Sequence record: NC_020077.1
Strand: one strand, 5' to 3'
DNA length: 64,000 bases
Position numbers and translations under genes: made by a program. Below the pieces are notes generated by a model that was not told the DNA's origin, made no database searches, and was given only the letters and a program-made list of their open reading frames with translations. Every line of letters starts with the position of its first letter. The stretch's first letter is position 1. Positions 1 to 17,450 of this stretch are shown here, piece by piece.

Positions 1-1130
1 CTACCTTTTTCTTAGTCCTGCTATCCTCTTACGTTATACCACCCCTTTTTACGTAAATTTTACGTTTTCCCCTTATTTTGTATTAATAAAGTTTTTGGAA
101 AAATATTTCAAAGACAAATTTTATTTCAATTTTGATCAAAATTCGAATTGACGTGCCGACATTTTCATTTTTTTATACTTCTTCTTTTAAAATTTGGATT
201 AAAAGGAAAAACCTAACGTTAATTTAGGTAAATTTAGAGAAATTGTATTATTAATATTTCACTGAATTTAATTCTCGATTTCATGAGTGATTTCATAAAG
301 TATCTAATATACGATATTATTTCTATTCCTAATAAAAGTTTTTATGATATCAACTTTATATATTCATTTTGAATTTATATATTATCAATACGCTTTTCCT
401 ATTTTTTTATCAATACCTATAGTTTTTTGAATTCAAATAATAAAATTTTTGTGACATATAGTTATTTTCATAAATAATGATATATAGTTATTATTGAAAA
501 TAAGAATATCAATTATAAAAAGTTTTCATGATAATTATTATATCTATTTGATTTTGTAATTAATGATGATATCATTATTTCTAAAAATAGTTGATATAAT
601 AATTTTTATATTTAATTTTTTAAGTGAATAAGTTATAAAATTGTTTTCAAAAATTTTTACATTTTGTTTTTATAGTAATTATTATATCTAGTTTTTATTA
701 TAAATATATATAATTATGATATTATAATTTTTATAATAATTATTTTTTATTGTAAATATGATAATCATGAAATTAACTGATTTGAAAATATATCTCATTT
801 ATAATAAAAAATTCAAATTATATAATTTGAGTGAAATTGAAATTAAAATATGTATAAATGATAAAATTGAATTTTTATAATATCGATATTAAATTTTTTA
901 TCTTAACTTATATGAAAAAGTTTATATCAACTTAAATATGAAAATTCAATTTTCATATTTCAGATTATCAATATAGTTTCAATTTCACATATATTAAATA
1001 AATTCAAAGGTATAAATGTTATCAGATAAGTTTATACTTTTGTATTTATGTTTAATCATATCATTATCATGATATAAATAGTTTATAATATCACTTATTT
1101 TATAATGATAAATAAAAACTCGAAATTCCT
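1..1130. other. Very AT-rich non-coding region, candidate replication origin
   Basis: No ORF in the track; long A/T runs; perfect 16-bp palindrome AATTTTGATCAAAATT at 128-143; precedes about 35 kb of co-oriented plus-strand genes. Origin role is inference. Confidence 0.4.
1063..1121 (+). repeat. 59-bp upstream repeat, copy 1
   Basis: ATTATCATGATATAAATAGTTTATAATATCACTTATTTTATAATGATAAATAAAAACTC; recurs at 2388, 3450 and 4430. Confidence 0.9.
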
Positions 1131-1184
1131 ATCCCTTATTTACTTTCAAGTTAATCTAATGATCTATTGACTTAATCACGTAAA

Positions 1185-1208
1185 TTTCACGATGATAATA
1201 CCGTAAAT
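1185..1208 (+). promoter_or_regulatory. Class I operator palindrome, copy 1 (consensus TTTTACGG-N8-CCGTAAAA)
   Basis: TTTCACGA-TGATAATA-CCGTAAAT; TATA box TTTAAATA at 1222, 13 nt downstream. Confidence 0.8.
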
Positions 1209-1263
1209 GATTAGAAAAAGATTTAAATATCCCTTTTCATAAAAGATATATTAGGAGTAAAAT

Positions 1264-1749
1264 ATGGCCGCACCCGAATTAGAAAACCCCGCCCAGAATA
1301 ATGCGGGGGAAAATTCGAATGAAGTAAATCTTGAAGAAATAATAAAAATAATATACGAAATGCGTAAAATCAGGGAGACGCTAGAACAATTAAAGCAAGA
1401 AGATCTTAATAGCGTTAAAAAACTAATTGTAAAAATTGATAATCAAGTAAAAAAATTAAAACAATTAATTGATGAGCGTGATGATTTACCAGTCATGAAA
1501 ATGGATATTAGCAGTTTAGCTAATTTAACGCAAACTTTAGTTAATAAAATTGTTAATCAAGAAATTAAAATAGAAACTTTATTTTTATTAATTACAGATT
1601 TAGTAAAATTAGTAACTGAAATAAAAACTAAACTAGAAATTAAATACAATATCGATATGAGCGCGGAAGAGATATACAAACTAGCAAGAGATATAGCATA
1701 CGACGTGGATGATTTTATATATTTCTTATATTCTTATTTAAATAATTAA
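1264..1749 (+). CDS. Hypothetical coiled-coil protein with shared N-terminal leader
   Basis: 161 aa; GGAG RBS; heptad-like L/I/K/E pattern; leader MAAPELENPAQNNAG. Confidence 0.75.
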   Translation: MAAPELENPAQNNAGENSNEVNLEEIIKIIYEMRKIRETLEQLKQEDLNSVKKLIVKIDNQVKKLKQLIDERDDLPVMKMDISSLANLTQTLVNKIVNQEIKIETLFLLITDLVKLVTEIKTKLEIKYNIDMSAEEIYKLARDIAYDVDDFIYFLYSYLNN

Positions 1750-1750
1750 A

Positions 1751-1803
1751 CTTTTTTTTTATTTTTGTTTTATACTTTTTCTAAACTTTTTATTATGTTA
1801 TTT
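1751..1803 (+). terminator. T-rich terminator-like repeat, also at about 2984-3041
   Basis: TTTTATTTTTGTTTTATACTTTTTCTAAACTTTTTATT follows both ORF1264 and ORF2589. Confidence 0.6.
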
Positions 1804-1825
1804 TAATTTTATTATGTTATTATAA

Positions 1826-2300
1826 TGTAATGCCGCCCGGCCATTATATCATTATTATATATTGTAATTTTGCCGCAGGCCCATCGCCGCATTTTACATT
1901 ATTATTATATTATACGGGCCCGCCGCCCCGCCATTATTCATTATATAATATTATAATTGCCGCCCCCGCCGCCTATAATTCATTATAATAATATATAATA
2001 ATGAATATGCCGCCGCCTAATCATTATTATAATGTAATGCTGGCCCGCCGCATTTAACATATATTATAATATAATAATGAATATGCCGCAGGCCGGCCCA
2101 TTATTCATTATTATATTATAATTGCCGCAGGCCTTTATCATTATTATAATAATGCCGCCGCCGGCCTGCCGCCGCATTAATCATTATATTATAATAATAA
2201 AATGTATAACTAATATTCATTATTATATATTATATATTGAATATGCCGCCGCGCCTATGCCGCAGGCCCGCCGCCGCCCTAATTACATTATTATAATATA
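1826..2300 (+). repeat. AT/GC mosaic satellite, block 1
   Basis: About 10 GC-rich islands (GCCGC, GCCGCAGGCC) separated by nearly pure A/T spacers such as CATTATTATAAT. Confidence 0.85.
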
Positions 2301-2387
2301 ATGAATAACTAATCTACAATATTCATTATATCAATTATAAAATTACATATATACACTTAATTCTTTTACTTATACTTTTTGTATAAT

Positions 2388-2446
2388 ATTATCATGATAT
2401 AAATAGTTTATAATATCACTTATTCTATAATGATAAATAAAAACTC
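2388..2446 (+). repeat. 59-bp upstream repeat, copy 2
   Basis: One mismatch to copy 1. Confidence 0.9.
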
Positions 2447-2509
2447 AAATCTAGTATTGATTTGAATTCCCTTAATTCTTTTAATTTACGCTATTGATAA
2501 TCACGTAAA

Positions 2510-2533
2510 CTTTACGGTGATAATACCGTTAAT
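2510..2533 (+). promoter_or_regulatory. Class I operator, copy 2
   Basis: CTTTACGG-TGATAATA-CCGTTAAT; TTTAAATA at 2547. Confidence 0.85.
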
Positions 2534-2588
2534 CATTAACAAAAGCTTTAAATACCCCTTTTCATAAATAGGTATTTAGGGGTAAAAA

Positions 2589-2981
2589 ATGGCCGCACAA
2601 CCCTTAACTCAAATCCCCGCGTCAAATGCGGGGGTAAAAGTTGATGAATTTTTTGATGAAAAAGAATTAATTAAAATCGCGAGCAGATTAGGGCCTGTAC
2701 AGAAAAAAGTACTAAAAGCACTAGCGCAGAGCGGCGGGAAAATGATGATGCAACATGACTTTAGGACCTGGGGGCAAAAAACTATAGCAGGCATCGTGGG
2801 CGGCGTAAATGCGGAATACCGCGCCTTAAACACGAGAAAACTATGCGAAGCGCTGGAGAGGAAGGGGCTAGTGACAATAACGATTGAAAAATGCCCTAAC
2901 CACCCTAAATATAATAAAAAATTTGTATATTTAACACCAAAAGGATATAAAATAGTAGAAATAATTTCTCAAAACGAATAA
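2589..2981 (+). CDS. Winged helix-turn-helix (MarR-like) protein with shared leader
   Basis: LGPVQKKVLKAL ... LCEALERKGLV ... FVYLTPKG pattern is typical of wHTH proteins. Confidence 0.7.
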   Translation: MAAQPLTQIPASNAGVKVDEFFDEKELIKIASRLGPVQKKVLKALAQSGGKMMMQHDFRTWGQKTIAGIVGGVNAEYRALNTRKLCEALERKGLVTITIEKCPNHPKYNKKFVYLTPKGYKIVEIISQNE

Positions 2982-3044
2982 AGTTTTTTTTTTAATTTTA
3001 TTTTTGTTTTATACTTTTTCTAAACTTTTTATTTTGTTATTATA

Positions 3045-3330
3045 CTTATGCCGCCGGCCGCCTTTATCATTATTATATTATAATATAATGATAATGGCCG
3101 CGCCCCCGCCGCCGGCCTGCCGCCGCACTTTACATTATATATAATATGCCGCCGGCCTTTATCATTATTATTTATTATATATAATGTATAACTAATATTC
3201 ATCATTATTATAATATGCCGCAGGCCCGCCGCCGCCCTAATTACATTATTATAATAATATATGCCGCAGGCCGGCATTTAATTATTATAATATATGCCGC
3301 GCCTATGCCGCCATCGCCGCACTTAACATT
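3045..3330 (+). repeat. AT/GC mosaic satellite, block 2
   Basis: Shares blocks with block 1, e.g. ATGCCGCAGGCCCGCCGCCGCCCTAATTACATTATTATAAT and AATGTATAACTAATATTCAT. Confidence 0.85.
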
Positions 3331-3449
3331 ATTATAATGAATATAATAATTAATAATTAATATACATTATATATTATATTTTATAAATATGATAAATACG
3401 CGTTTTACCCCCTAATACTTATACTTTTGTAAATTACTTTATGCATATC

Positions 3450-3508
3450 ATTATCATGATATAAATAGTTTATAACTACATTTATTCTATAATGATAAAT
3501 AAAAACTC
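3450..3508 (+). repeat. 59-bp upstream repeat, copy 3
   Basis: About 4 mismatches to copy 2. Confidence 0.9.
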
Positions 3509-3581
3509 AAATCTAGTATTGATTTGAATTCCCTTAACTATTTCAATTCACTCTATTGATTCATTTCCTTAACTACGTAAA

Positions 3582-3605
3582 TTTTACGGTAATAATGCCG
3601 TAAAA
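3582..3605 (+). promoter_or_regulatory. Class I operator, copy 3 (perfect arms)
   Basis: TTTTACGG-TAATAATG-CCGTAAAA; TTTAAATA at 3619. Confidence 0.9.
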
Positions 3606-3662
3606 GTTAAACAAAAGATTTAAATACCTCTTTTTACTAAAATTATACTTGAGGGTTAAGAA

Positions 3663-4103
3663 ATGGCCGCACCCCTTAACCCAACCCCCGCGGCAAATGC
3701 GGGGGATAAAATTGAAAAAATAAAACAAATCGCAAAAATAATATATCCATATATATATACTAGCGATAATGAATTTAGCGAAACGGATGCAGAAGATTTA
3801 GAAAGAGAGTTACAATATTTACCAAAAATTATAAACTTATTGGAATGGGCATTAAAGAATGTAAATAAGGTCGAAATAAGCGCAAGTGATGAGTTAAAGT
3901 TTTACGATAAAAAAACGGGCTATGCATTGTATATAACGTTAGCTAAAGGGCGCGGAGCGCAAACGGAAGTAGTAGTTTACCCTGACGCAAATACGATATA
4001 CGTTTTAGTATTTAAAGCGCCCGTATTGAAAATATTGAAAAGGGCTAAAAAGGCACTAGAGGATGCGCTAAAAAGATATACAAAAGCGCAACAAATCTTA
4101 TAA
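3663..4103 (+). CDS. Hypothetical protein with shared leader
   Basis: 146 aa; GAGGG RBS; leader MAAPLNPTPAANAG. Confidence 0.75.
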   Translation: MAAPLNPTPAANAGDKIEKIKQIAKIIYPYIYTSDNEFSETDAEDLERELQYLPKIINLLEWALKNVNKVEISASDELKFYDKKTGYALYITLAKGRGAQTEVVVYPDANTIYVLVFKAPVLKILKRAKKALEDALKRYTKAQQIL

Positions 4104-4124
4104 GATATAACATTTTTTTATTTA

Positions 4125-4350
4125 ATATATGCCGCAGGCCGCGGCATAAACAAACAAATAGTTATAAAAATACCGCCGCTTGCGGCCCGGCGGCGGGCGG
4201 GTTAACAAAAACAAATAATTGATAAACAAATACCGCCCGCCGGCTTATTCTTTTATTTATTAGTTATATAATATTATTATCCCATTTTTTAATGCGCTTT
4301 TATCCCCCATTTTTTATATACTTTAATTATGAATATGCCGCAGGCCGCCC
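4125..4350 (+). repeat. AT/GC mosaic satellite, block 3 (degenerate)
   Basis: AATATGCCGCAGGCC twice; GC hairpin CCGCCG-N9-CGGCGG. Confidence 0.7.
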
Positions 4351-4429
4351 TTTACATTGTATAATATAATGAATAATGCGCTTAATCCCCCGTTTTACTT
4401 ATACTTTTGTATTTAAATTTAAGTATAAC

Positions 4430-4488
4430 GTTATACTGATATAATCACTTTATAACTACATTTATTTTATAATGATTAATAAAAACTC
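4430..4488 (+). repeat. 59-bp upstream repeat, copy 4 (degenerate)
   Basis: 3' half TTTATAACTACATTTATTTTATAATGATTAATAAAAACTC is conserved. Confidence 0.8.
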
Positions 4489-4550
4489 AAAACTACTATT
4501 GGCCAAATCGCCCTTAACTATTTCAATTAGTATATTGATAATCACGTAAA

Positions 4551-4574
4551 TTTCACGGGGATAATGCCGTAAAA
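4551..4574 (+). promoter_or_regulatory. Class I operator, copy 4
   Basis: TTTCACGG-GGATAATG-CCGTAAAA; TTTAAATA at 4588. Confidence 0.85.
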
Positions 4575-4628
4575 AAGGACAGAAAGCTTTAAATACTTCT
4601 TTTAACAAAAGTATATTTGTGGGTAAAA

Positions 4629-5564
4629 ATGTCACAACCCCTAAACCAAACCCCTGCCCAAATGGAGGGGGAAATTAAAAAACAACACATAAAAATATAC
4701 GAGTTTACAAAACAATTGAAAGGGCTAGTAATTGAAAGAGTAAAGTCAAAGCTAGGAGTTATTATTAATGATAATACAGAAGAAATTAATGAATTAATAG
4801 ATATTAATACTGAAGAACTAACGGACACTATAACTAAGTACATAGTACTATTACAAGATCACGTGGAGGATTACGAGACCTGGAGATGGGTTGAGCCAGT
4901 GGATCACCTATTATATTTATCTCAAATGAAGGCAAAACTTGAAGTAAATACTATATTAAGCAAAAATGAAACGAGAAAGGTAAGGCAGAAATTAGCTAAA
5001 TTAGAAGAAAAGATATATAAAACTATAGGCTTAATATATGCCGTAATTTGTAGTGAGAAAAGCGGCAGATTAAATATAATACAGGAGATAATTAATAATA
5101 ACGTAGAGACACGTTTTAACAACGTTATTAGCGATATTGACGCGTTATTAACCAAGCTAGAAAATGTAAATATAAGTGATGAAGCTACAAAAATGCTTAT
5201 TAATAATATAATTAGCACAGCTAAGCAACTTAAAGAAGAAGTAGTAAAGTTAAGAAGTGAAGGAGTAAAAATAGCAAGTATTAACGAAATAGTACTATTT
5301 ATAAAGAAGCTTAACGAATTATTAGCACAAAGCGCATTAATTTCTACTCTAGCTAATTTGATTTACGTAAAAGATAAACAGGTATATGAGCAGTTATTTG
5401 GGCAGCGAAGTTTACTGAATTCGGCGGACAATGCTTATCACTCTTTATTTAAAGTTTTAAAAGATATTAGTAGCAGTTATATTGAAGGATATGAACATAT
5501 AAAGCAAGCTTGCGCAGATAAAACATACGCAGAATATTACACAACAGTATGCAGTGATGAATGA
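4629..5564 (+). CDS. Hypothetical all-alpha protein with shared leader (start moved to ATG 4629)
   Basis: GTGGGT RBS before the ATG; leader MSQPLNQTPAQMEG. Confidence 0.8.
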   Translation: MSQPLNQTPAQMEGEIKKQHIKIYEFTKQLKGLVIERVKSKLGVIINDNTEEINELIDINTEELTDTITKYIVLLQDHVEDYETWRWVEPVDHLLYLSQMKAKLEVNTILSKNETRKVRQKLAKLEEKIYKTIGLIYAVICSEKSGRLNIIQEIINNNVETRFNNVISDIDALLTKLENVNISDEATKMLINNIISTAKQLKEEVVKLRSEGVKIASINEIVLFIKKLNELLAQSALISTLANLIYVKDKQVYEQLFGQRSLLNSADNAYHSLFKVLKDISSSYIEGYEHIKQACADKTYAEYYTTVCSDE

Positions 5565-5923
5565 TGAAAGAAATGAAAAAAGAAGTAAAACTACTTAAAA
5601 AATTAGATAAACAAGCATTTAAGATAGTACTATTATTATATAAAGCAGAGCCTGGTAATCAAAAGCGGCGTGAACTATTGTCGCACTATTATAACGCGCA
5701 TTTAGCTGTAATGCATAGTGACGAGCTTATTTGTAAAAAAATATACGATAACTTATTTATTTACAGCGTTCTGGGGAACGTTATAAAAGCGTTAGAAGGG
5801 GCACTATACTATGCTAACGATATACAAAATTATCATGCGGAGATATTAGCAAAAATTCTAAAGGAAATGTTAGACATTTTACAAAAAATACAAACAATAA
5901 AACTAGAGATTATCGCGGAATAA
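5561..5923 (+). CDS. Hypothetical helical protein
   Basis: 120 aa; ATGA overlap with the upstream stop suggests translational coupling. Confidence 0.7.
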   Translation: MMKEMKKEVKLLKKLDKQAFKIVLLLYKAEPGNQKRRELLSHYYNAHLAVMHSDELICKKIYDNLFIYSVLGNVIKALEGALYYANDIQNYHAEILAKILKEMLDILQKIQTIKLEIIAE

Positions 5924-6058
5924 CGCGTTACTTTAGTAGCAGATTTTTACATGCTTATTTTTTACATTCTTATGCTTTTTGATACGAAATTATTTATAAT
6001 CTATTAATATAATACTGACCTTAATTTAGACAGGGGATTTCTGCCCTTAACGCCCTTA

Positions 6059-6082
6059 TTTTACGGCTATATTACCGTAAAA
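6059..6082 (+). promoter_or_regulatory. Class I operator, copy 5 (perfect arms)
   Basis: TTTTACGG-CTATATTA-CCGTAAAA; TTTAAATA at 6096. Confidence 0.9.
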
Positions 6083-6143
6083 ATCGAGAGAAAGCTTTAA
6101 ATATCTCTTTTACTAATATATAATTAGGGGGTGAAAATCAAAA

Positions 6144-6689
6144 ATGATCGAACCTTTACGTGAATTATTTAAACATTTTAAGGAAGAAAGTGAAAAAATA
6201 AGGGAAGAGTTGGCAAGGGAGAGCGAAGAAGTTAACGTACTGATGAAAACTGATGATGAAAAAATTAAAGAAAAAATAACAGAATTATACAATACAATTG
6301 TTACGCAGGACGCATTACAGCCTGGCTTAACTAAGCTGTATGATACAATAATTGATTATGCGAGGCAACTTGACGATAAAAAGGCGTCATTTATACTTAA
6401 CGCGTTTCACAATAAAATTTACATTACGAAAGCAGATATACAAGAAACGCTAAAGGAAATGTATAATGTCGTTAATGGCAAAACGAAAAAGAAGGATAGC
6501 AAAAACGAGTTATTAATGTTGACTATTAACTTGTTTAAACATTATGCGGCGATGAAATCGCTAACGTTAATTTTATGCGACATTAAAGACTTACGCGAGA
6601 GTGAAGCCTGCAGAATTAACGCGGAGAGTAATAATAAGCTAAAGGATAATATACAGTATTTGCTAGATTTATTGCTGCACAAAAGTTAA
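6144..6689 (+). CDS. Helical protein, paralog of ORF6710
   Basis: IKEKITELYN ... TLKEMYNVVNGK ... LTINLFKHY aligns with ORF6710. Confidence 0.8.
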   Translation: MIEPLRELFKHFKEESEKIREELARESEEVNVLMKTDDEKIKEKITELYNTIVTQDALQPGLTKLYDTIIDYARQLDDKKASFILNAFHNKIYITKADIQETLKEMYNVVNGKTKKKDSKNELLMLTINLFKHYAAMKSLTLILCDIKDLRESEACRINAESNNKLKDNIQYLLDLLLHKS

Positions 6690-6709
6690 ATTTAATTAGG
6701 TGGGTCAAA

Positions 6710-7267
6710 ATGTCTGATCCCATAAATCAAATGATTGAATATCTTGAGCAGGAAATAAGAGGAATGCAAGAGAGGCGAAAACAAGAAGAGAAAGAAGAAC
6801 GTAAAAGAATAAGGCAAGAGAGGCAGGAAGAAATTAAAGAAAAAATAACGAAATTGTATAATATAATTGTAAAAGAAGATTTACTAGGAGTCAATTTAAA
6901 TAAGCTGTATAATGTAGTTGAAGACTACGCTAAAGAGATTGATAGTGAGACGGCAAGTAAAGCGTTTATGAATCTGATAGCGGCGATGGAAACTGCGCGA
7001 GAGAATATGCAAAAAACGCTAAAGGAAATGTATGATATTGCGAATGGTAAAAAGAAGAATAGCAAAAATAAACTATTAGTACTAACTATTAACTTGTTTA
7101 AGCAGTATGGCATAATAAGGGCATTATATGATTCCCTGGACCGTTTTAGCAAAATACGCAAAAGTGAGGTTTATAATGATACGGGAGATAAAAGCCTGAG
7201 GACGTTGTTACATATCACACTAAATAGTAGTTTAAAGTTCTTGCTAGAGTTACTAATCGAAAGGTAA
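6710..7267 (+). CDS. Helical protein, paralog of ORF6144
   Basis: IKEKITKLYN ... TLKEMYDIANGK ... LTINLFKQY; GGTGG RBS. Confidence 0.8.
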   Translation: MSDPINQMIEYLEQEIRGMQERRKQEEKEERKRIRQERQEEIKEKITKLYNIIVKEDLLGVNLNKLYNVVEDYAKEIDSETASKAFMNLIAAMETARENMQKTLKEMYDIANGKKKNSKNKLLVLTINLFKQYGIIRALYDSLDRFSKIRKSEVYNDTGDKSLRTLLHITLNSSLKFLLELLIER

Positions 7268-7461
7268 GGAGGTGAGAGAATGGAAGGGGGTTTCAGTCAC
7301 AAATATGTTAACACCTGCTTATGAGGCATTAATTGTGGACTCGGCCCCTTACTTTATGCTTTTTTGGTTCGGTTTCTATATTATGGTTATGTAATTATTC
7401 TTAACTTATTTCCATAATATCTGACGATTTTTAGGAAATGGTTTGTCTTTTTATGACCTTA

Positions 7462-7485
7462 TTTTACGGGGATACTACCGTGAAA
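7462..7485 (+). promoter_or_regulatory. Class I operator, copy 6
   Basis: TTTTACGG-GGATACTA-CCGTGAAA; TTTAAATA at 7499. Confidence 0.85.
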
Positions 7486-7538
7486 AAGGACAGAAAACTT
7501 TAAATACATCTTTTACTAATATTTAATTGTGGGTAAAA

Positions 7539-8492
7539 ATGTCACAACCCCTAAACCAAACCCCCGCTCCACAAGATGCGGGGGATAAATTGGATGAATT
7601 AAAAGAAAAAATAAAAGAATATATAGAAGATTTGGAAGATCTATCACATGAGTACGACCTACCCGATTTCGCTGCTGATGACTTGCGCGCAGAGCTAGAA
7701 TACATAAGTAAAGAAGCAAATAACGCAGATCTGGCAAAAAGCGTTAAAGAAGTAGTAGAATTAATGGCAAATGCGCTAGATGAGCAAGTAGAGAAAGCGC
7801 TAGAGAATGGCAAGGCATTACGGAACTCTTATGATAATAACAAAATTAGCGATATGTTTAAGAGCGCAGTAAAAATTTACGCAAACTTAAAAACAATAAA
7901 TACAATAGTAGAATATCTAAAGCAATATGTTAAGGTATTAGGCATTACGGAGGCAAATTTAGAAAGGTTTACACAAGAGGCTGGAAGCATTATAGCTATA
8001 CTAGCAAATCACATAGCGCAACATGTTAAACTTAGCGAAGACGATGCAAGAGATTTAGAAAACGACCTGATATATTACCACGATCTAGCAGAAAACTGGA
8101 CTGATATTGAGGATGCTCTTGAGGAAATTGAGTATGATTTAGAAAACGACACAGAGTTTAAGCGTGGAACGTATAAGGCCTTGATGAAGGTTTTGAATGC
8201 AATGCGGGAGCACCATGATAAAGGAGTAGGTTATGGGAACGGCGCGGATGAAATAGTATATGACGCATACGATTCGGACGAAGATGAATATAAGCCTGAC
8301 GAAATAGACACGGAAACACTATTACTAAACCTGGCGGAAACTTACGCACACTTTATAGCACTACAAGCACTTTACGACAACATAATGAGCGAGTATATAA
8401 GTAATGAAAAATTAGAAGATGCAACGAAAAAAGCAATAAATAGGGCAAAAGATGCACAAGAAATCATTTTAAGCAGCTATAATAGCAACTAA
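7539..8492 (+). CDS. Acidic helical protein, paralog family with 8718 and 12468 (start moved to ATG 7539)
   Basis: Leader MSQPLNQTPAPQDAG; motifs AVKIYANL and LAETYAHFIALQALYD. Confidence 0.85.
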   Translation: MSQPLNQTPAPQDAGDKLDELKEKIKEYIEDLEDLSHEYDLPDFAADDLRAELEYISKEANNADLAKSVKEVVELMANALDEQVEKALENGKALRNSYDNNKISDMFKSAVKIYANLKTINTIVEYLKQYVKVLGITEANLERFTQEAGSIIAILANHIAQHVKLSEDDARDLENDLIYYHDLAENWTDIEDALEEIEYDLENDTEFKRGTYKALMKVLNAMREHHDKGVGYGNGADEIVYDAYDSDEDEYKPDEIDTETLLLNLAETYAHFIALQALYDNIMSEYISNEKLEDATKKAINRAKDAQEIILSSYNSN

Positions 8493-8636
8493 ACGTTTTT
8501 TCTTTTTTAGTACCCTTTTTAAAGTTTTTATTGTTAATATTATAACGGCCTACTACTTAACATATCATTATTTTTAAATTAGGGCCATGATAGTTTACGG
8601 TTTTTAGCTAAGGGATTCTGGCCTTTAACGCCCTTA

Positions 8637-8660
8637 TTTTACGGGGATACTGCCGTTAAA
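8637..8660 (+). promoter_or_regulatory. Class I operator, copy 7
   Basis: TTTTACGG-GGATACTG-CCGTTAAA; TTTAAATA at 8674. Confidence 0.85.
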
Positions 8661-8717
8661 AATGAGAGAAAACTTTAAATACCTCTTTTACCTATAGTTA
8701 TATTGAGGGTGAAAAAA

Positions 8718-9617
8718 ATGTCTCAACCCTTAAATCAAACCCCTGCCCCAGCCGCGGGGGCAAATCCAGATAAATTAAGAGAAAAAATAGGAAAATATAT
8801 AAAAGATTTAGAAGATCTGAAGCTGGGTTATGATATAAACGATATACAAGAAGAGATAGAAGAAAGTTACAGTATAACGAAGGGCGTTAAAGAGGCACTA
8901 AAAGTAACATATGTTATCTTAACGGACTACTATAATGACGCCAAGGAAAAAAGCAAGTTGCTAAGTGATGCGTATAATAAAAATGCAATTAAAAGCATGT
9001 TTGATAATGCTATAGAGCTTTATGCAGATTTAGCAGCAACTAATGCATTATTAAGATTAATGCGCTCGTTTAAGATAGAGCCCGAACCGACGCTCACAAC
9101 GCCCTTATTTATAGATTTTACTAGTAAGGCCAAAGACACAGTAATACTATTAATAGGCAGGTACGTAAAGGACGTTAAAAAAGATGATCGGAAAACAGTA
9201 ATTAATAAAATAACTGAAGAGCTAAGCTGGACTATTTCGTATCAAAACAAACTCGAAAGTGACTTCAAAGAATATGAAGAAGAATTTGAAGAGAAAGATG
9301 ATATATCAGCAGGAGAATACAAGGTTCTAAAGAGAGCGCTAAAGTTAATAAAATATTATTACTTGTCTGGAATAAGACTCATAAAAGAAACTAGAGCGAT
9401 GATAAAGCGAGATGGCAAAAATGTTAACATGAGAAAAATAGCCTGGAAATTGACAGAAACGTATGCCACGATGACTATACCATTGGCGCTATACGATATT
9501 TTATGTAGCGACAAATACGACATATGCTATAAATGGTGTGATTATGCCTTGCTATTCCCTACCAAGGATGTTAAAGATGCGATAGAGGTGATTAAGGAGA
9601 ATGCGCTAGGAGACTAA
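8718..9617 (+). CDS. Helical protein, paralog family with 7539 and 12468 (start moved to ATG 8718)
   Basis: Leader MSQPLNQTPAPAAG; motifs AIELYADL and LTETYATMTIPLALYDILC. Confidence 0.85.
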   Translation: MSQPLNQTPAPAAGANPDKLREKIGKYIKDLEDLKLGYDINDIQEEIEESYSITKGVKEALKVTYVILTDYYNDAKEKSKLLSDAYNKNAIKSMFDNAIELYADLAATNALLRLMRSFKIEPEPTLTTPLFIDFTSKAKDTVILLIGRYVKDVKKDDRKTVINKITEELSWTISYQNKLESDFKEYEEEFEEKDDISAGEYKVLKRALKLIKYYYLSGIRLIKETRAMIKRDGKNVNMRKIAWKLTETYATMTIPLALYDILCSDKYDICYKWCDYALLFPTKDVKDAIEVIKENALGD

Positions 9618-9632
9618 ATATTTTTAAGTTTT

Positions 9633-11882
9633 TTGTTTTATAACTTTAGTGAAAAGACAGTGTACGCCATTAGACGCAATCGCATAGAAAGCCAAGATTA
9701 TATTAGGCTGATCGAAACGGATAAATTTCCATCTGGCCTGATTAACGAGGCCTCAGCCAGAGAAAAAAGTAGGGGTGGAATGCCACCAATATGGGAAATG
9801 GTTTTTTGGTGGACTAGGAAACCCTTAATAGGGGCTAGAGCAATTATCGCAGCCTCACTACTGCCAGAGTCTGTCGATAAAAGCAAGTTTTTGCGCTTGA
9901 TTAGGCTAGATAGTAATGGATCGGTTGTTTACCATAAATATAATCCAGCTGATATACCCTCGTTAAAGAAGTACTTTAAAAATGCTAAGCTTTTAGACCC
10001 TTTTGCGGGCTTTGGTTCAATACCTTTAGAAGCTATACGGCTAGGCGTAGGGGAAGTTGTGGCCTCTGACCTTTTGCCTACGGCCTACATTTTCCTTAAA
10101 GCCATTTTGGAAATACCTAAATGGGCCAGAGATAATGACCTTCATGAGACACTTATTAAAGATGTTGAGAAATGGGGCAATTGGATAATAGATGAGTTAA
10201 GAAAGGATCCAGAAATTCAGGAACTGTACGATGATGATGCTGATGGTTACATTGGTACATGGGAAATAAGATGCCCACATTGTGGTAATTATACACCGCT
10301 AGTAGGGAGTTGGTGGTTAGCGAGAAAGGTAAATGGGAAAAGAAATAAGAAAGAGAAGGACAATTTTAAAAGACTTGCCTGGATGGTTCCAATTATCGTT
10401 AATAATAAGGTTGATATAGATGTAATTGACCTTAATAAAGAATTATCTAGAGATAAAATAAATGCTAAAGTTGACGCTGGACAAGGGCTTATAGAAGTTT
10501 ATAAAGAAGTAAACGGGATACTTCAGCTTGAAAAAACGTATCAGGTGCAGCAAGCTAACGTAGACATAAAAAGAAATACTGCAAAATGCTTAGTATGCAA
10601 TACTACGATAAAAGGGGGGAGACAATTTTATGTTAAGGATGCGGTGAGGGATTGGAATGAAAACTTAGAAAAATACTTAGCAGGGGAGATAAGTAAAGAG
10701 CAATTATTAAATAGTAAGGCAAGGCCAAGGATAATAGTCAAAATAAAAAAGGGCATAGTTTTTGAGAAGGTAGAAGATCAAGAGAAGTTATGGAAGGCTT
10801 TAGAGATGCTTAAACAAATATGGGGAGATCTTGATATACCTACGGAGCTCGCGCAGAATTATGAAAGTCGTCATATGCCTACTAATTTTGGTGTCGATAA
10901 ATTTTTCAAATTCTTTAACCCACGCCAGCTTTTAACTGCTGTTAAGGTTGTTAAATTACTACGTGAGGTTGGGAAGAGAGTTGAGGAAGAGAAATTAAAA
11001 GTATGGAATAAAGATAAGGCGAGGAAATACGCTGAAGCAATAGTTACTTATTTAACAATGTTATTAGTTAAATATATGTATTATAGTTCGATCGGGACCG
11101 CCTGGGACGCTACTACTGTTAAAAGTTTTGATAGTTTCTCGATGCGTGGACTAAGGGTGATGTGGAATTGGGTAGATATTACTCCTTACAGTAAGCTGAG
11201 CGGATCTTTTGTGAAATCACTGCGCAGTGTATTAAGAGGCCTTCAATACCTTGTTGACGCAATTTCGGACAGCCCTACCAGAGTTAGGGTTTTGTTGGAT
11301 GACGCTACTAAACTAAATAAGATTACAGAGGACTTCGATTTAATAGTTACTGACCCACCATACTGGGATGATGTTGCTTATACAGAGCTTAGTGATTTAT
11401 ATTATGTATGGTTAAAAAGGGCTTTAAGTGATGTTAAGGAAGTTAATGGGGTTTTAATGAGGGTTCCTAAATTTTATCCAGAGGCATTCTTTGATAATGC
11501 TGGGAATGAAATAGAAACTCAATGGAAGAAATTTGCAATTAGAGAAATTAGCAAGTATAGGGGAAGAGTTAAGTACTTTTATAAAAATGGTAATGCTTCT
11601 GAGCATTTAAAATGGTTATTGTCAGAAGCTTTTAAGACAATTGCAGATAGACTAAAGGAAAATGGAATTTTAGTAACGTATTACGCTCACACAATTCCAG
11701 AAGCCTGGAATGCATTTCTAGAAGCTGGCTGGAGTAAGGCAGGTTTAAAGATAACTAAAACGCATTTATTTGTAACAGAATCCAAAACGCGAATTACGGC
11801 GCAAGACAAAATTACAGTAAATACTTCGTTGGTCATAATATGGCGCAAGAGAAAGACGATGGAGAAACTTTTAAAAACATAA
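9633..11882 (+). CDS. DUF1156/COG1743-type adenine-specific DNA methyltransferase with Zn ribbon
   Basis: N-terminal RLIE ... EASAREK ... FWWTRKPL; motif I DPFAGFGSIPLEA; CPHC and CLVC; motif IV TDPPY. Start codon uncertain. Confidence 0.9.
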   Translation: MFYNFSEKTVYAIRRNRIESQDYIRLIETDKFPSGLINEASAREKSRGGMPPIWEMVFWWTRKPLIGARAIIAASLLPESVDKSKFLRLIRLDSNGSVVYHKYNPADIPSLKKYFKNAKLLDPFAGFGSIPLEAIRLGVGEVVASDLLPTAYIFLKAILEIPKWARDNDLHETLIKDVEKWGNWIIDELRKDPEIQELYDDDADGYIGTWEIRCPHCGNYTPLVGSWWLARKVNGKRNKKEKDNFKRLAWMVPIIVNNKVDIDVIDLNKELSRDKINAKVDAGQGLIEVYKEVNGILQLEKTYQVQQANVDIKRNTAKCLVCNTTIKGGRQFYVKDAVRDWNENLEKYLAGEISKEQLLNSKARPRIIVKIKKGIVFEKVEDQEKLWKALEMLKQIWGDLDIPTELAQNYESRHMPTNFGVDKFFKFFNPRQLLTAVKVVKLLREVGKRVEEEKLKVWNKDKARKYAEAIVTYLTMLLVKYMYYSSIGTAWDATTVKSFDSFSMRGLRVMWNWVDITPYSKLSGSFVKSLRSVLRGLQYLVDAISDSPTRVRVLLDDATKLNKITEDFDLIVTDPPYWDDVAYTELSDLYYVWLKRALSDVKEVNGVLMRVPKFYPEAFFDNAGNEIETQWKKFAIREISKYRGRVKYFYKNGNASEHLKWLLSEAFKTIADRLKENGILVTYYAHTIPEAWNAFLEAGWSKAGLKITKTHLFVTESKTRITAQDKITVNTSLVIIWRKRKTMEKLLKT

Positions 11883-12336: not shown

Positions 12337-12386
12337 CCCGTTTTTCCCTTGGGTTTTTATGACTATAATGCTATGTTTATATACGA

Positions 12387-12431
12387 TTTTACGTTTTTGG
12401 CTATGTAGCTCATGGTAGAAAGTTTTATAAG
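12387..12431 (+). promoter_or_regulatory. Class II promoter TTTTACGT-N21-TAGAAAGTTTTATAAG
   Basis: The exact 16-mer is also at 16009, 20980, 22767 and 26545; variants at 58497 and 58832. Confidence 0.85.
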
Positions 12432-12467
12432 CTTCAATAACAAAGTATAAAATCGGTGGTTTAAAAT

Positions 12468-13466
12468 TTGTCACAAATAAAGATAAATAATAAGGCTGAA
12501 CTTATTTCGAAAATACAACAGGATATTGAAGAGCTAACTCAAGTTGAGGGTACTTTTGGAATATATCACAGAATTGACAGTATAGAGGTAGATCTTAAAT
12601 TTGCACAGAAAGAGATTGAGGAGAAAAGTTTTACATCGAAAAGTGTGCAAAGAGCAATAGAACTGATACTTAGCATTTTAGAAGGCGTCTACTATGATGA
12701 AATAAGAGAGTATTCCGTAATACTAAGTAACATTTTTAATAAGGCTTTTGATAAGGAGAAAGGCATAATAGTAACAGAGAAGTTTGATGCTAAAAATACG
12801 TTTATGTATGTTTTAGAAATTTACGCAAATTTATGGGCAATGAGCGCATTATACTGGCTTATAAAAGACAGCAGAGATATAGATCTACTAGATGAACTAA
12901 AAATAAATTTAGATGGATCTATGATGAGAGCAGTTTATATACTTAATAATATTACGAATTACTATATACAGTATGACAAAATTAGCACAGACAAAAGGCA
13001 AGTCTTGGTAGAAGTGCTAGGTAAGTATCTCTCGAAGTATTATGACATGGTAGAAAATTATCATGAGCATCTTGAGGGAGACATGGATAAGATTGCCGCG
13101 ATGCTTAAGGCAAATGAGGATATTGCTAGAGGAACTTACAGCATACTAAGCGCAGCTATTGATGAAATGTGGGAGTATTATAATGTAGCAATCACAGCTG
13201 CTAATCAGGCTAGATTAATGTTAGAAAAAGAAGCCTTAAACGAAGAGGAGCAAAGGGTAGGTGAAGAAAAAGTTGATTTTAACGTGATTACACAAAACTT
13301 GAGAGAGGCATATATAGGGTTTAAGGCATTACAAGCGTTTTATGACGTACTGTGTAATGATACGTATGAGCTATGCCTCGATGATTTCCAAAAGCATCTT
13401 GATGAGGCCCTAAAGAACGCTAAAGAGGCCTTACACTTAATCGCAGAGCTTTGCATAACATTCTGA
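12468..13466 (+). CDS. Helical protein, paralog family with 7539 and 8718 (no leader)
   Basis: TTG start after GGTGGT; motifs VLEIYANL and [19 protein letters not shown]. Confidence 0.85.
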
Positions 13467-16379: not shown

Positions 16380-17450
16380 GTGATGAAAATGGCGTATTTA
16401 TACTTGCAGCTACATAAATCTTTATTAAAGAAAGTAAAGAAAGAAGCGTCACGTTTAAATGTAAAACGAAAACTTTTGATGAGTGCTGCAATTCAAGCGT
16501 TTGTCGAAAACCCGCCAGAAACCATAAATCTACCGCCAGACTTGAATAACGGATTTGAACTGACAATTGGCGTTACCTTAGAACTGCCTAAAGATGTTAT
16601 AGAAAAGATTTATTCTTACACTATATCAAAAGCTCTTTCGGTAAAAAAAGTAGCGGAGATAGCGATAACTACTTTTCTTAGCCTTTCTGATGAACAGAAA
16701 ATGATCTATATAGATAAGGAGATAAAAAGACTTGAAGAGAAGAGAAAGAGAAAACTAAGCGAAGAGCGTATGTTTCAATTTCTGGAAAGTATTGCTTCAA
16801 AAGATCCTTCTCGATCAGTTCGAATAAGTTTTAAATGTGTAGATGACTTACATAAACTACTTGAAAACGAAGCACGTGAAAGGGGAACAACAGCGAGTGA
16901 GCTTATAAGAGGTGCTGTTGAAGAATTTTTACAAAACTACTATAAGGGCAAGATAAAAATAAGAAAGCTGTATGAGGCTGCTAAAGACTCGCATTATAGC
17001 AAAGCTGGGGACAAAGTATATGACCTAAAAGTACCTACATATATTCTATTACATTTAATGGAAATAGCTGATAATGTGAAGTTGTCTGTGGCTATGCTTA
17101 TTCGTCTTGCCATAATGAGATACTTGAAGCTGGTTGACATGCAGCCGCGAAAACGAGTCAGATTCGCATGTGCGGCTAGTCTTATTTTAATGATAGAGGA
17201 GGAGGTTAAAAAAACTAACACCGCAAAAGACGCAATTATAAAGGAGGCAGTGAAACAACTTTTACAGCATAGTGTCGATGAGATAAGGGAGTTAAGCAGA
17301 AAAACTTCTCCCTATTCGGGCAGCTATGAAGTTTTCATAAAGCTTCCTGAGAGCCTTGTCGTACAACTAGATGCTATTGTAAGAAAAGTAAGGACTAGTA
17401 GAAGCAATCTCATACGGACTGCATTGGCAGCTTATTTCAAGTTAGTGTAA
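16380..17450 (+). CDS. Six-RHH protein
   Basis: Six strand-helix-helix units; the last two are paralogous to ORF16057 and ORF21029. Confidence 0.85.
   Translation: MMKMAYLYLQLHKSLLKKVKKEASRLNVKRKLLMSAAIQAFVENPPETINLPPDLNNGFELTIGVTLELPKDVIEKIYSYTISKALSVKKVAEIAITTFLSLSDEQKMIYIDKEIKRLEEKRKRKLSEERMFQFLESIASKDPSRSVRISFKCVDDLHKLLENEARERGTTASELIRGAVEEFLQNYYKGKIKIRKLYEAAKDSHYSKAGDKVYDLKVPTYILLHLMEIADNVKLSVAMLIRLAIMRYLKLVDMQPRKRVRFACAASLILMIEEEVKKTNTAKDAIIKEAVKQLLQHSVDEIRELSRKTSPYSGSYEVFIKLPESLVVQLDAIVRKVRTSRSNLIRTALAAYFKLV

Follow-up and report, generated by a model that had tools for sequence, protein, structure and literature searches.

How do the viruses of archaea, most of whose genes lack an assigned function, gain new genes and put them to the test? 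The process is poorly understood, and the locus described here offers a concrete route that can be traced in sequence data. It lies in positions 1-64000 of Sulfolobus virus STSV2 (JQ287645/NC_020077), to which the 64,000-nt stretch we analyzed, hereafter the window, is 100% identical with equal coordinates. Between 1030 and 9617 the window carries an array of seven units, single genes or gene pairs, that use one common expression frame; its open reading frames (ORFs), ORF01-09 (1264-9617), are hypothetical proteins in GenBank, and a DUF1156 adenine methylase gene comes next. The homologous region is found in STSV1 (AJ783769, L002) and in an STSV3 contig (OP999021, L003), where the array is on the minus strand. 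Our overall reading, to which we assign a probability of roughly 0.7, is that these are cassettes on a standard frame, that recombination takes place at the frames, and that the cargo is co-regulated and predicted to be expressed early. The array is probably the variable arm of STSV2 adjoining its replication origin, made up of seven transcription units with one standard frame.

The frame opens with a palindromic operator whose core, ACGNNNATANTNCCGT (ACGN-N8-CCGT), occurs seven times in the window, always on the plus strand, where 0.01 occurrences are expected from dinucleotide shuffles. Flanking bases enlarge it to TTTYACGG-N8-CCGTRAAA, a palindrome of ~24 bp. The TATA box TTTAAATA follows exactly 17 nt past every core, or 13 nt when the spacer is counted from the full palindrome TTTACGG-N8-CCGTAAAA, and the seven fixed operator-13 nt-TATA arrangements claimed in the original prediction, a reading of these letters without database searches, are thereby borne out with exact spacing. 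A purine-rich B recognition element (BRE), (a/g)aaag(a/c), precedes the TATA box in 7/7 units, the pair matching the TTTAWATA promoter type, and the ATG lies 32-40 nt past the TATA box behind a GGTG, GGGT or GAGG ribosome-binding motif. Sulfolobus promoters have their TATA box centered near -26/-27, and because this geometry is established we place the predicted transcription start ~10 nt before the ATG and the center of the palindrome near -57. The motif of the array is BRE/TATA rather than a sigma-70-type early promoter, and the host is archaeal; a scan for bacterial promoters and terminators gave counts only modestly higher than shuffles (76 versus 59.4 ± 7.9) and says little about an archaeal virus.

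Host TBP and TFB (the TATA-binding protein and transcription factor B) would be expected to drive strong transcription from every frame, and a single DNA-binding factor may recognize the palindrome and co-regulate the seven units. That factor is probably not ORF02, a small winged-helix protein of the array that we considered as a general operator-binding regulator, because STSV1 and STSV3 retain the palindrome but lack ORF02. The direction of such control depends on where the palindrome sits: its downstream end is 13 nt short of the TATA box and ~6 nt short of the BRE, with no overlap of the core promoter. Known regulators of archaea, among them Ptr2, TrmBL1 and Sta1, usually activate when their sites lie upstream of BRE/TATA. 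The palindrome, with its center near -57, matches that position, and a viral or induced host factor could thus use it as an activator site, in which case the array would be middle, late or conditional instead of immediate-early. Distant relatives that keep the promoter and leader with another palindrome, TTTTACA-N5-TGTAAAA, are also as expected if the factors were virus-specific. We regard this as a possibility to be kept in mind rather than favored: the BRE/TATA is near consensus and of the strong type that is activator-free in SIRV2 early genes, and no candidate activator was identified.

The frame extends past the start codon. Six units (ORF01, 02, 03, 04, 08 and 09) share a translated leader that contains a hairpin with C4-5 and G4-5 arms, starting ~23 nt after the ATG and followed by A-rich sequence; ORF06 is the exception, and the count of six agrees with the original prediction. 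CCCC-N3-21-GGGG occurs nine times on the plus strand of the window (0.8 expected), and six of these occurrences are codons 8-15 of the leader ORFs. Over seven cargo families the hairpin is present in 37/47 frames, with its 5' arm starting at +22 to +24 in 27/37, stems of 4-8 bp and loops of 3-19 nt. A covariance model of the leader matched only arrays, at 56-76 bits for six matches in the window and 25.8 bits for a remnant in ORF07, and Rfam gave no real match on window 1-10000.

The conserved element might instead be an N-terminal peptide tag serving virion packaging, export, turnover or a host partner, with the hairpin incidental to it. The peptide motif M-S/A-Q/E-P-L-N-Q-T-P...G is indeed recognizable in seven families, the reading frame through the leader is always kept, and the leader is modeled as a disordered N-terminal extension, as tags often are. 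The nucleotides, however, are conserved in ways that a peptide would not demand. At the conserved positions stand the genome's rarest codons: the 3'-arm glycine is GGG in 37/37 frames, although GGG makes up 12.4% of the glycine codons of long STSV2 ORFs, in which CCC and ACC account for 4.9% of Pro and 8.2% of Thr codons. The C-run occurs in all three codon phases and yields differing dipeptides (TP, IP, NP, PL or PP), the G-run begins at the third codon position in 33 frames and at the first in 4, the alternative leader MAENISQ changes 5/7 first residues and retains both runs, and the arms persist while the loop varies. We therefore consider the tag rather unlikely. Nucleotide-level constraint on both arms is well supported by these comparisons, and an RNA hairpin is their most economical reading. 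Among family-B leaders with near-identical loops, pair 5 is C-G in one contig (L027), U.G in STSV2 ORF09 and U-A in two others (L021, L023). The cells of the five core pairs comprise 157 C-G, 9 U.G, 2 U-A, 2 C.A and 5 A/G, and 9 U.G against 2 C.A leans toward pairing in the sense RNA. The hairpin would then act near the 5' end of the transcript, with an effect on mRNA stability or translation or by binding a protein, or may serve as a recombination border; at its fixed distance from the start codon, it raises a question for the control of mRNA stability or translation in archaea.

What stands behind the frames is far less constant. All-against-all BLASTP of the STSV1, STSV2 and STSV3 arrays defined family A (STSV2 ORF04; STSV1 ORF1, 5 and 7; STSV3 ORF7), family B (STSV2 ORF08, 09 and 12; STSV1 ORF10 and 11; STSV3 ORF3 and 11), family C (confined in this comparison to STSV1 and STSV3), family D (STSV2 ORF06 and 07; STSV3 ORF15), family E (STSV2 ORF03; STSV3 ORF8), G (DUF1286) and H, with ORF01 and STSV1 ORF2 as singletons. 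The cargo of the seven STSV2 units falls into six families, all of them virus-only. The claim that the ORF bodies are mostly unrelated therefore stands, except that ORF06/07 and ORF08/09 (with ORF12 outside the array) are paralogues.

The frame of operator, TATA box, Shine-Dalgarno motif and leader also heads STSV1 ORF1, 2, 3, 4, 5, 6, 7, 9, 10 and 11 and STSV3 ORF3, 4, 7, 8, 10, 11, 12, 14 and 15. Homologues of family B and ORF02 pointed to contigs of hot-spring metagenome-assembled genomes (MAGs), and 12 contigs were compared. The full frame is present in L021, L023, L025, L027 and L029, and the more distant L022, L024, L026, L028 and L030 have BRE/TATA and a hairpin leader (VENTPQxQTP...G) without ACGG-N8-CCGT; some of the latter carry TTTTACA-N5-TGTAAAA, behind which their ORF02-type genes sit. 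It seems from these sequences that the operator changes from virus to virus and the leader stays. An alignment of STSV1, STSV2, STSV3 and metagenome contigs had been proposed beforehand, and in it frames persist while cargo and order differ (see the table). STSV1, STSV2 and STSV3 are collinear toward the origin and toward the methylase, and between the origin and ORF08 blastn of the three aligns almost only frames, each matching many places. A scan for operator + 17 nt + TATA returned STSV1 and STSV2 only from IMG/VR, six apparently chance matches from JGI metagenomes (fermentation and other samples) and three chance matches in Bacillota from GTDB genomes, with no host copies or proviruses across the three collections.

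Several frames outside the seven units, or in relatives, merit mention in their own right. ORF12, located past the methylase (12350-12470, +), has a frame decayed to a TTTTACG half-site and TTTTATAAG, with no leader and a TTG start, and its homologue in STSV4 (L020 650-770) retains TTACCGTAAAA, TTTATAAG and a short CCCT-aga-GGGG leader remnant. STSV2_73, outside the window, keeps BRE/TATA and a ribosome-binding site and has neither palindrome nor leader. The annotated start of STSV1 ORF3 (L002 3739-3830) takes in the gene's own operator and TATA box (ATGACGTTAATTTACGTCTATAATACCGTTAAAAAGG...TTTTTAAGTATAAAG); the true start is probably ~90 nt downstream (MTQATQQVVK), like that of STSV3 ORF10. 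SMRV1 gp01/gp37, considered as carriers of a related leader owing to their common MVENV N-terminus, have it in common through the inverted terminal repeat of that virus. The STSV-like contigs from Chinese hot springs (proteins P0002-P0017 and P0043-P0049) are filed in MAGs of unrelated archaea, labeled Micrarchaeaceae, Parvarchaeota, Aenigmatarchaeota, Thermoplasmata, Conexivisphaerales and Metallosphaera, which is probably a binning artefact.

Four lines of evidence, each independent of the rest, indicate recombination at the frame. The upstream part of STSV2 unit 4 (-290 to -90) is up to 100% identical to the upstream part of STSV3 ORF12 and its cargo (+5 on) 77-93% identical to that of STSV3 ORF7, the switch point lying inside the stretch common to these two STSV3 genes, which is the frame; unit 3 is likewise mosaic, with the upstream part of STSV3 ORF12 and the cargo of STSV3 ORF8. 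Second, contig L029 is ~92% identical to STSV3 over E-A-F-G-C and B and has an extra ORF02-type cassette between H and E. A single STSV3 frame (17201-17441, reverse-complement coordinates) matches both L029 3422-3671 and 4371-4545; therefore, the extra cassette is bounded by two frame copies, and such a single-cassette insertion or deletion is what unequal homologous exchange would predict. Third, L029 gene 495 has 94% identity to STSV1 ORF6 (family C) but carries an ORF01-type leader, MAEFELENPAPQNAG, where STSV1 ORF6 has MVENISQTPNSG, and the join lies directly past the G-run. Finally, identity from TATA box to ATG is 74% between unrelated cassettes within a genome and 62% between genomes (permutation p<0.0005), and is 53-72% in orthologous cargo pairs; STSV1 ORF11 and STSV2 ORF09, with 90% protein identity, reach only 56% over this stretch. 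The claim of a recombinational cassette platform is in this way upheld by crossovers inside the frame, a frame-bounded insertion or deletion and leader exchange between families, and we regard the interpretation of the units as recombining cassettes as supported by the comparison.

Plain tandem duplication and divergence from one gene, with promoter and leader as conserved relics and no exchange of cassettes, could account for some of the same features. The array does contain real paralogues (ORF06/07 and ORF08/09/12, and in STSV1 three copies each of A and C), almost the whole of the cargo is alpha-helical, and weak N-terminal BLAST links join A to B and E to B when the leader is included. 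These inter-family similarities vanish, however, when the leader is left out of the comparison. After trimming of 20 N-terminal residues, profile-profile comparison of 13 families and singletons gave every inter-family pair a probability of at most 4.4%, except family D with STSV3 ORF14 (96%). A single superfamily of all helical families was accordingly rejected, profile similarity being nil without the leader; very remote kinship of the families is still possible because the profiles are shallow. Duplication alone also fits poorly with orthologous cargo standing behind different upstream modules with breakpoints in the frame, with leaders exchanged between families, with frames that are closer within a genome than between orthologues, and with the winged-helix alpha/beta fold modeled for ORF02, which is unlike the helical families. 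As a complete explanation it appears improbable.

Still less probable, in our judgment to a marked degree, is that the repeats have a part in replication or in genome structure around the origin, as iteron-like sites or fork or cruciform signals, with gene placement secondary. The region at 1..1030 is a putative replication origin, as is reported in the STSV1 genome paper, and its STSV1 annotation lists repeats and stem-loops. The array abuts this AT-rich region, every unit points away from it, and the spacers are full of palindromes with AT arms and GC loops. Yet the operator palindromes keep a locked spacing of 17 nt to a TATA box and ~75 nt to an ATG that has a ribosome-binding site, the copies are 1-1.5 kb apart, unlike iterons, and the hairpin keeps a fixed distance from the start codon.

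We thus return to cassettes that recombine at their frames. The standard frame is made up, in order, of a ~24-bp palindrome (TTTACGG-N8-CCGTAAA) and 13 nt; a BRE rich in purines, with TTTAAATA; the ~23 nt that lead up to the predicted transcription start; a ~10-nt 5' untranslated region that holds a GGTG-type ribosome-binding site; seven conserved codons after the ATG; the C4-5...G4-5 hairpin (~codons 8-15); and the cargo. The comparison shows the repeated frames to be the sites of homologous recombination. On our reading, unequal crossover and gene conversion between them add, delete, re-order and re-head cassettes, and also maintain the likeness of frames within a genome. Downstream, the exchangeable frame extends as far as the 3' arm of the hairpin, and new cargo is therefore joined in frame behind a short, disordered leader peptide. 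The standard promoter-leader frame would thus both express the cargo and be the site at which it is swapped.

A number of points weigh against this picture. All relatives come from one hot-spring region, and the sample is small and related. We infer timing, transcription starts and co-regulation from the sequence and from analogy to SIRV2, and an "early, then shut off" program is not assured because the palindrome lies upstream of the BRE, a position more typical of archaeal activators than of repressors. The concerted evolution of the frames might stem from co-adaptation to a genome-specific factor and not from gene conversion. Searches of the cargo against Pfam, NCBIfam, PADLOC, PDB sequences and PHROGs returned only STSV-specific PHROGs and sub-threshold noise, and no cargo is similar to any known anti-defence protein. 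As to the hairpin, 88% of cells are paired in an unbiased alignment, and 33/500 shuffles reach its covariation score; formal covariation is weak because the stem is almost invariant C-G, and the 0-1/500 shuffles that reach the score of a model-fitted alignment come from an alignment biased toward structure. Folding z-scores of the six hairpins range from -0.85 to -4.3, two falling below -4 and the rest between -0.85 and -2.2.

Part of what we describe has a precedent. Bhoobalan-Chitty et al. (2024, Nat Commun; PMC11065993) looked within the 100 bp before the start codon of single genes for common regulatory sequences with strong BRE/TATA, their rationale being that SIRV2 early genes, known anti-CRISPRs (Acrs) included, have a common motif of this kind. 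They report consensus motifs for STSV1 and STSV2, and Supplementary Data 1 lists STSV2_01, 02, 03, 04, 06, 08, 09 and 73 (ADG.81-89), together with STSV1 ORF1, 2, 4, 6, 9, 11 and 72, as predicted anti-defence genes; the STSV genes are predictions, none of them validated there. The main text of that paper does not mention a leader, a hairpin or recombination, and an earlier account of conserved 5' ends in the STSV1 (2005) and STSV2 (2014) genome papers or the STSV2 transcriptome paper (2016) is possible. Because promoter sharing and the anti-defence prediction for these seven genes are already published, what is added here is the hairpin leader, frame-mediated shuffling and concerted evolution. 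Like the archaeal-virus gene sets of that study, the array consists mostly of single unannotated genes with a common strong BRE/TTTAWATA promoter and flanking sequence; the conserved sequence in its SMV2 example overlaps the BRE, however, whereas the STSV palindrome is upstream of it, and the paper treats ORF02 as an anti-defence gene like the others instead of an associated regulator. Following this literature prediction, early host interaction or anti-defence is the most likely role for the cargo.

Comparison with other systems helps to define what the array is not. The original prediction drew an analogy to promoter-early-stem-loop (PeSL) elements of T4-type phages, in which sigma-70 promoters are combined with terminator stem-loops (Arbiol et al. 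2010, PMC2839356; Comeau et al. 2014, PMC4122927) and which mediate shuffling and mini-circles (PMC2839356). The analogy holds for recombination between motif copies: in both cases repeated small motifs flank genes, in T4-type phages non-essential orphans of a hyperplastic region, and inter-motif recombination explains insertions, deletions and replacements. It fails for the parts, since STSV2 has an archaeal BRE/TATA and a hairpin within the gene at ~+23 in place of a sigma-70 promoter and a terminator. The STSV hairpin is not a terminator because it lies inside coding sequence, at codons 8-15, without a T-run; T-rich runs lie separately past the stops. Moreover, the STSV frame includes translated codons, so that exchange would yield in-frame N-terminal fusions, unlike in PeSLs. 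PeSLs are therefore an analogy only, and the STSV array is not a member of their family. Nor does it resemble an integron, as the annotation shows no integrase gene within the array or next to it and the junctions are long homologous frames instead of short att sites. Loci controlled by anti-CRISPR-associated (Aca) proteins (bacterial Aca1/Aca2; Aca8 in SIRV2) also have a strong promoter with an inverted repeat, and the STSV2 set includes the small winged-helix ORF02. Here, however, the helix-turn-helix gene is not linked wherever the operator occurs (STSV1 and STSV3 lack an ORF02 homologue), the palindrome does not overlap the core promoter, and no known Acr is found in the array. The paralogue families at rudivirus genome ends (the AcrID1 family of SIRV1-3) are similar as clustered, fast-evolving small genes with a common promoter and in-cluster duplication, but in STSV at least six unrelated families use the frame, which reaches into the coding sequence.

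A bolder and more tentative proposal, which we hold to be possible but would not bet on, is that the frame is a dedicated platform for gene capture and display. The hairpin border within the gene may promote exchange by template switching or fork stalling, unrelated genes would be fused behind a translated leader, and one palindrome factor, possibly with one RNA-hairpin factor, would control the set. If true, the platform would be the homologous-recombination counterpart of PeSLs and integrons, working through exon-like N-terminal fusion; we know of no such gene-capture system described in Archaea. In practical terms, the frame pinpoints where to search for host-interaction or anti-defence genes in STSV-like viruses, and it offers Sulfolobus genetics a compact expression module that is predicted to be strong and is probably co-regulated.

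Features of the STSV2 array, with the order of cassettes in relatives (letters are cargo families; ori, origin side)
Feature	Position	Strand	Description
AT-rich origin-proximal region	1..1030		Left border of array; 76-87% identity, collinear in STSV1/STSV2/STSV3
Type-I upstream module, 4 copies of 126 nt	1048-1173, 2373-2498, 3435-3560, 4415-4540	+	Repeat family D2, 66-90% identity
Palindromic operator core, units 1-7	1189-1204, 2514-2529, 3586-3601, 4555-4570, 6063-6078, 7466-7481, 8641-8656	+	ACGN-N8-CCGT
TATA box TTTAAATA, units 1-7	1222-1229, 2547-2554, 3619-3626, 4588-4595, 6096-6103, 7499-7506, 8674-8681	+	Fixed operator spacing
ORF01	1264..1749	+	161 aa, helical, singleton family, leader MAAPELENPAQNNAG; ADG.88
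Leader hairpin of ORF01	1287..1308	+	CCCCGC-10 nt-GCGGGG
Leader hairpins of ORF02, 03, 04, 08, 09	2615-2633, 3685-3704, 4651-4670, 7561-7583, 8740-8759	+	
T-rich putative terminator after ORF01; copy after ORF02	1752-1808; 2991-3047	+	Repeat family D4, 91% identity
GC-cluster spacers separating cassettes 1-4	1810-2340; 3047-3400; 4120-4390		GC-only clusters between AT-only inverted arms
ORF02	2589..2981	+	130 aa, MarR/PadR-like winged-helix protein; ADG.89
ORF03	3663..4103	+	146 aa, family E, 58% identity to STSV3 ORF8; ADG.81
Two-gene cassette ORF04 + ORF05	4629..5923	+	Family A, 311 aa, and family F, 120 aa; ADG.83
Two-gene cassette ORF06 + ORF07	6144..7267	+	Family D paralogues, 40% identity; ADG.82
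ORF08	7539..8492	+	Family B, 317 aa, all-helical, disordered 14-residue leader peptide
ORF09	8718..9617	+	Family B, 299 aa, last cassette, abuts DUF1156 adenine methylase gene
Cassette order, STSV2			ori / 01 / 02 / E / A-F / D-D / B / B / methylase
Cassette order, STSV1			ori / A / ORF2 / H / C / A / C / A-G / C / B / B / methylase
Cassette order, STSV3			ori / D / D-like / C / B / H / E / A-F-G / C / B / methylase
Cassette order, L029			C / B / H / 02 / E / A-F-G / C
Cassette order, L021			B / A-F / D / D / B / B / methylase
Cassette order, L023			H / B-G / A-F / D / D

Among the individual cargo genes, ORF01, for which a coiled coil had been predicted, has only weak matches in Pfam. ORF02 alone has a recognizable fold, and the winged-helix assignment made for it from its sequence has moderate support: the AlphaFold2 model (predicted local distance difference test score, pLDDT, 68.8) has a helix-helix-wing topology, and Foldseek matches it to MexR, MarR, MftR and PadR-type folds with probability ~1 and E values of 2e-3 to 5e-2. 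Its nine relatives are all in hot-spring viral-like contigs; the family is present in STSV2, L029, L024 and L030, and no homologue was found in the STSV1 and STSV3 arrays or the other phage records searched. ORF08 is modeled with more confidence (pLDDT 91.8, predicted template modeling score 0.90), with residues 1-14, the leader peptide, below 50; none of the PDB folds matches at E<=1e-3, with only local four-helix-bundle overlaps. An exhaustive profile search of 1.84 billion proteins yielded 27 cluster representatives of family B, all of them unnamed.

In the two-gene cassettes the second gene lacks a frame of its own. ORF05 has an overlapping stop/start with ORF04; family F always comes second behind A, and the A-F pair is kept in STSV3, L021, L023 and L029. 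ORF07 begins 20 nt behind ORF06, which has the frame without the leader hairpin, and is promoterless with a leader remnant, MSDPINQ (window 6690-6760, +). Its homologues in L021 (3450-3640) and L023 (4600-4780) have a complete TATA frame of their own, and the promoter may have been either lost in STSV2 or gained in these contigs. Right behind ORF07, downstream of a strong GGAGGTGA motif, lies an unannotated 40-codon ORF (7272-7394, +) with a hydrophobic C-terminus (..SAPYFMLFWFGFYIMVM) that is kept in L021 (4140-4265) with three amino-acid changes.

Beyond the frame proper, the 59-bp upstream repeat attributed to units 1-4 is indeed common to these units, though the repeated block proves to be longer, at 126 nt. 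This type-I module also heads other cargo families in STSV1, STSV3 and L023, and module types I and II are each found with families A, B, C and E. Some 75-50 nt ahead of the TATA box, type-II modules have a second conserved element, ATAATACC-N6-(CTTTT agg AAAGG or CCCTTC...GGGGGG)-GTTCT-N-CCTTAAACGCC; examples lie at 6025-6060 and 8600-8640 of the window, and L002, L003 and L029 have many. It comprises small inverted repeats whose arms differ among copies and precedes the operator in most cassettes of STSV1 and STSV3 as well as in units 5-7 of STSV2. At the other end of the cassettes, the T-rich 3' sequence said to be shared by units 1 and 2 was recovered at 91% identity; archaeal transcription termination occurs at T-runs.

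The spacers between cassettes 1-4 are unusual in composition. GC-only blocks such as GCCGCCGCCGGCC and GGCCCGCCGCCGCCC (C-rich on the plus strand) form loops between AT-only arms, as at 2063-2083/2102-2122, where 21-nt arms are 100% complementary around an 18-nt GC loop. The window has 62 runs of >=7 G/C, 33 of which fall in 1-5 kb, mostly in these spacers. Spacers of this kind also stand before type-I upstream modules in STSV1, STSV3 and L023, and they are reminiscent of the GC clusters of yeast mitochondrial DNA.

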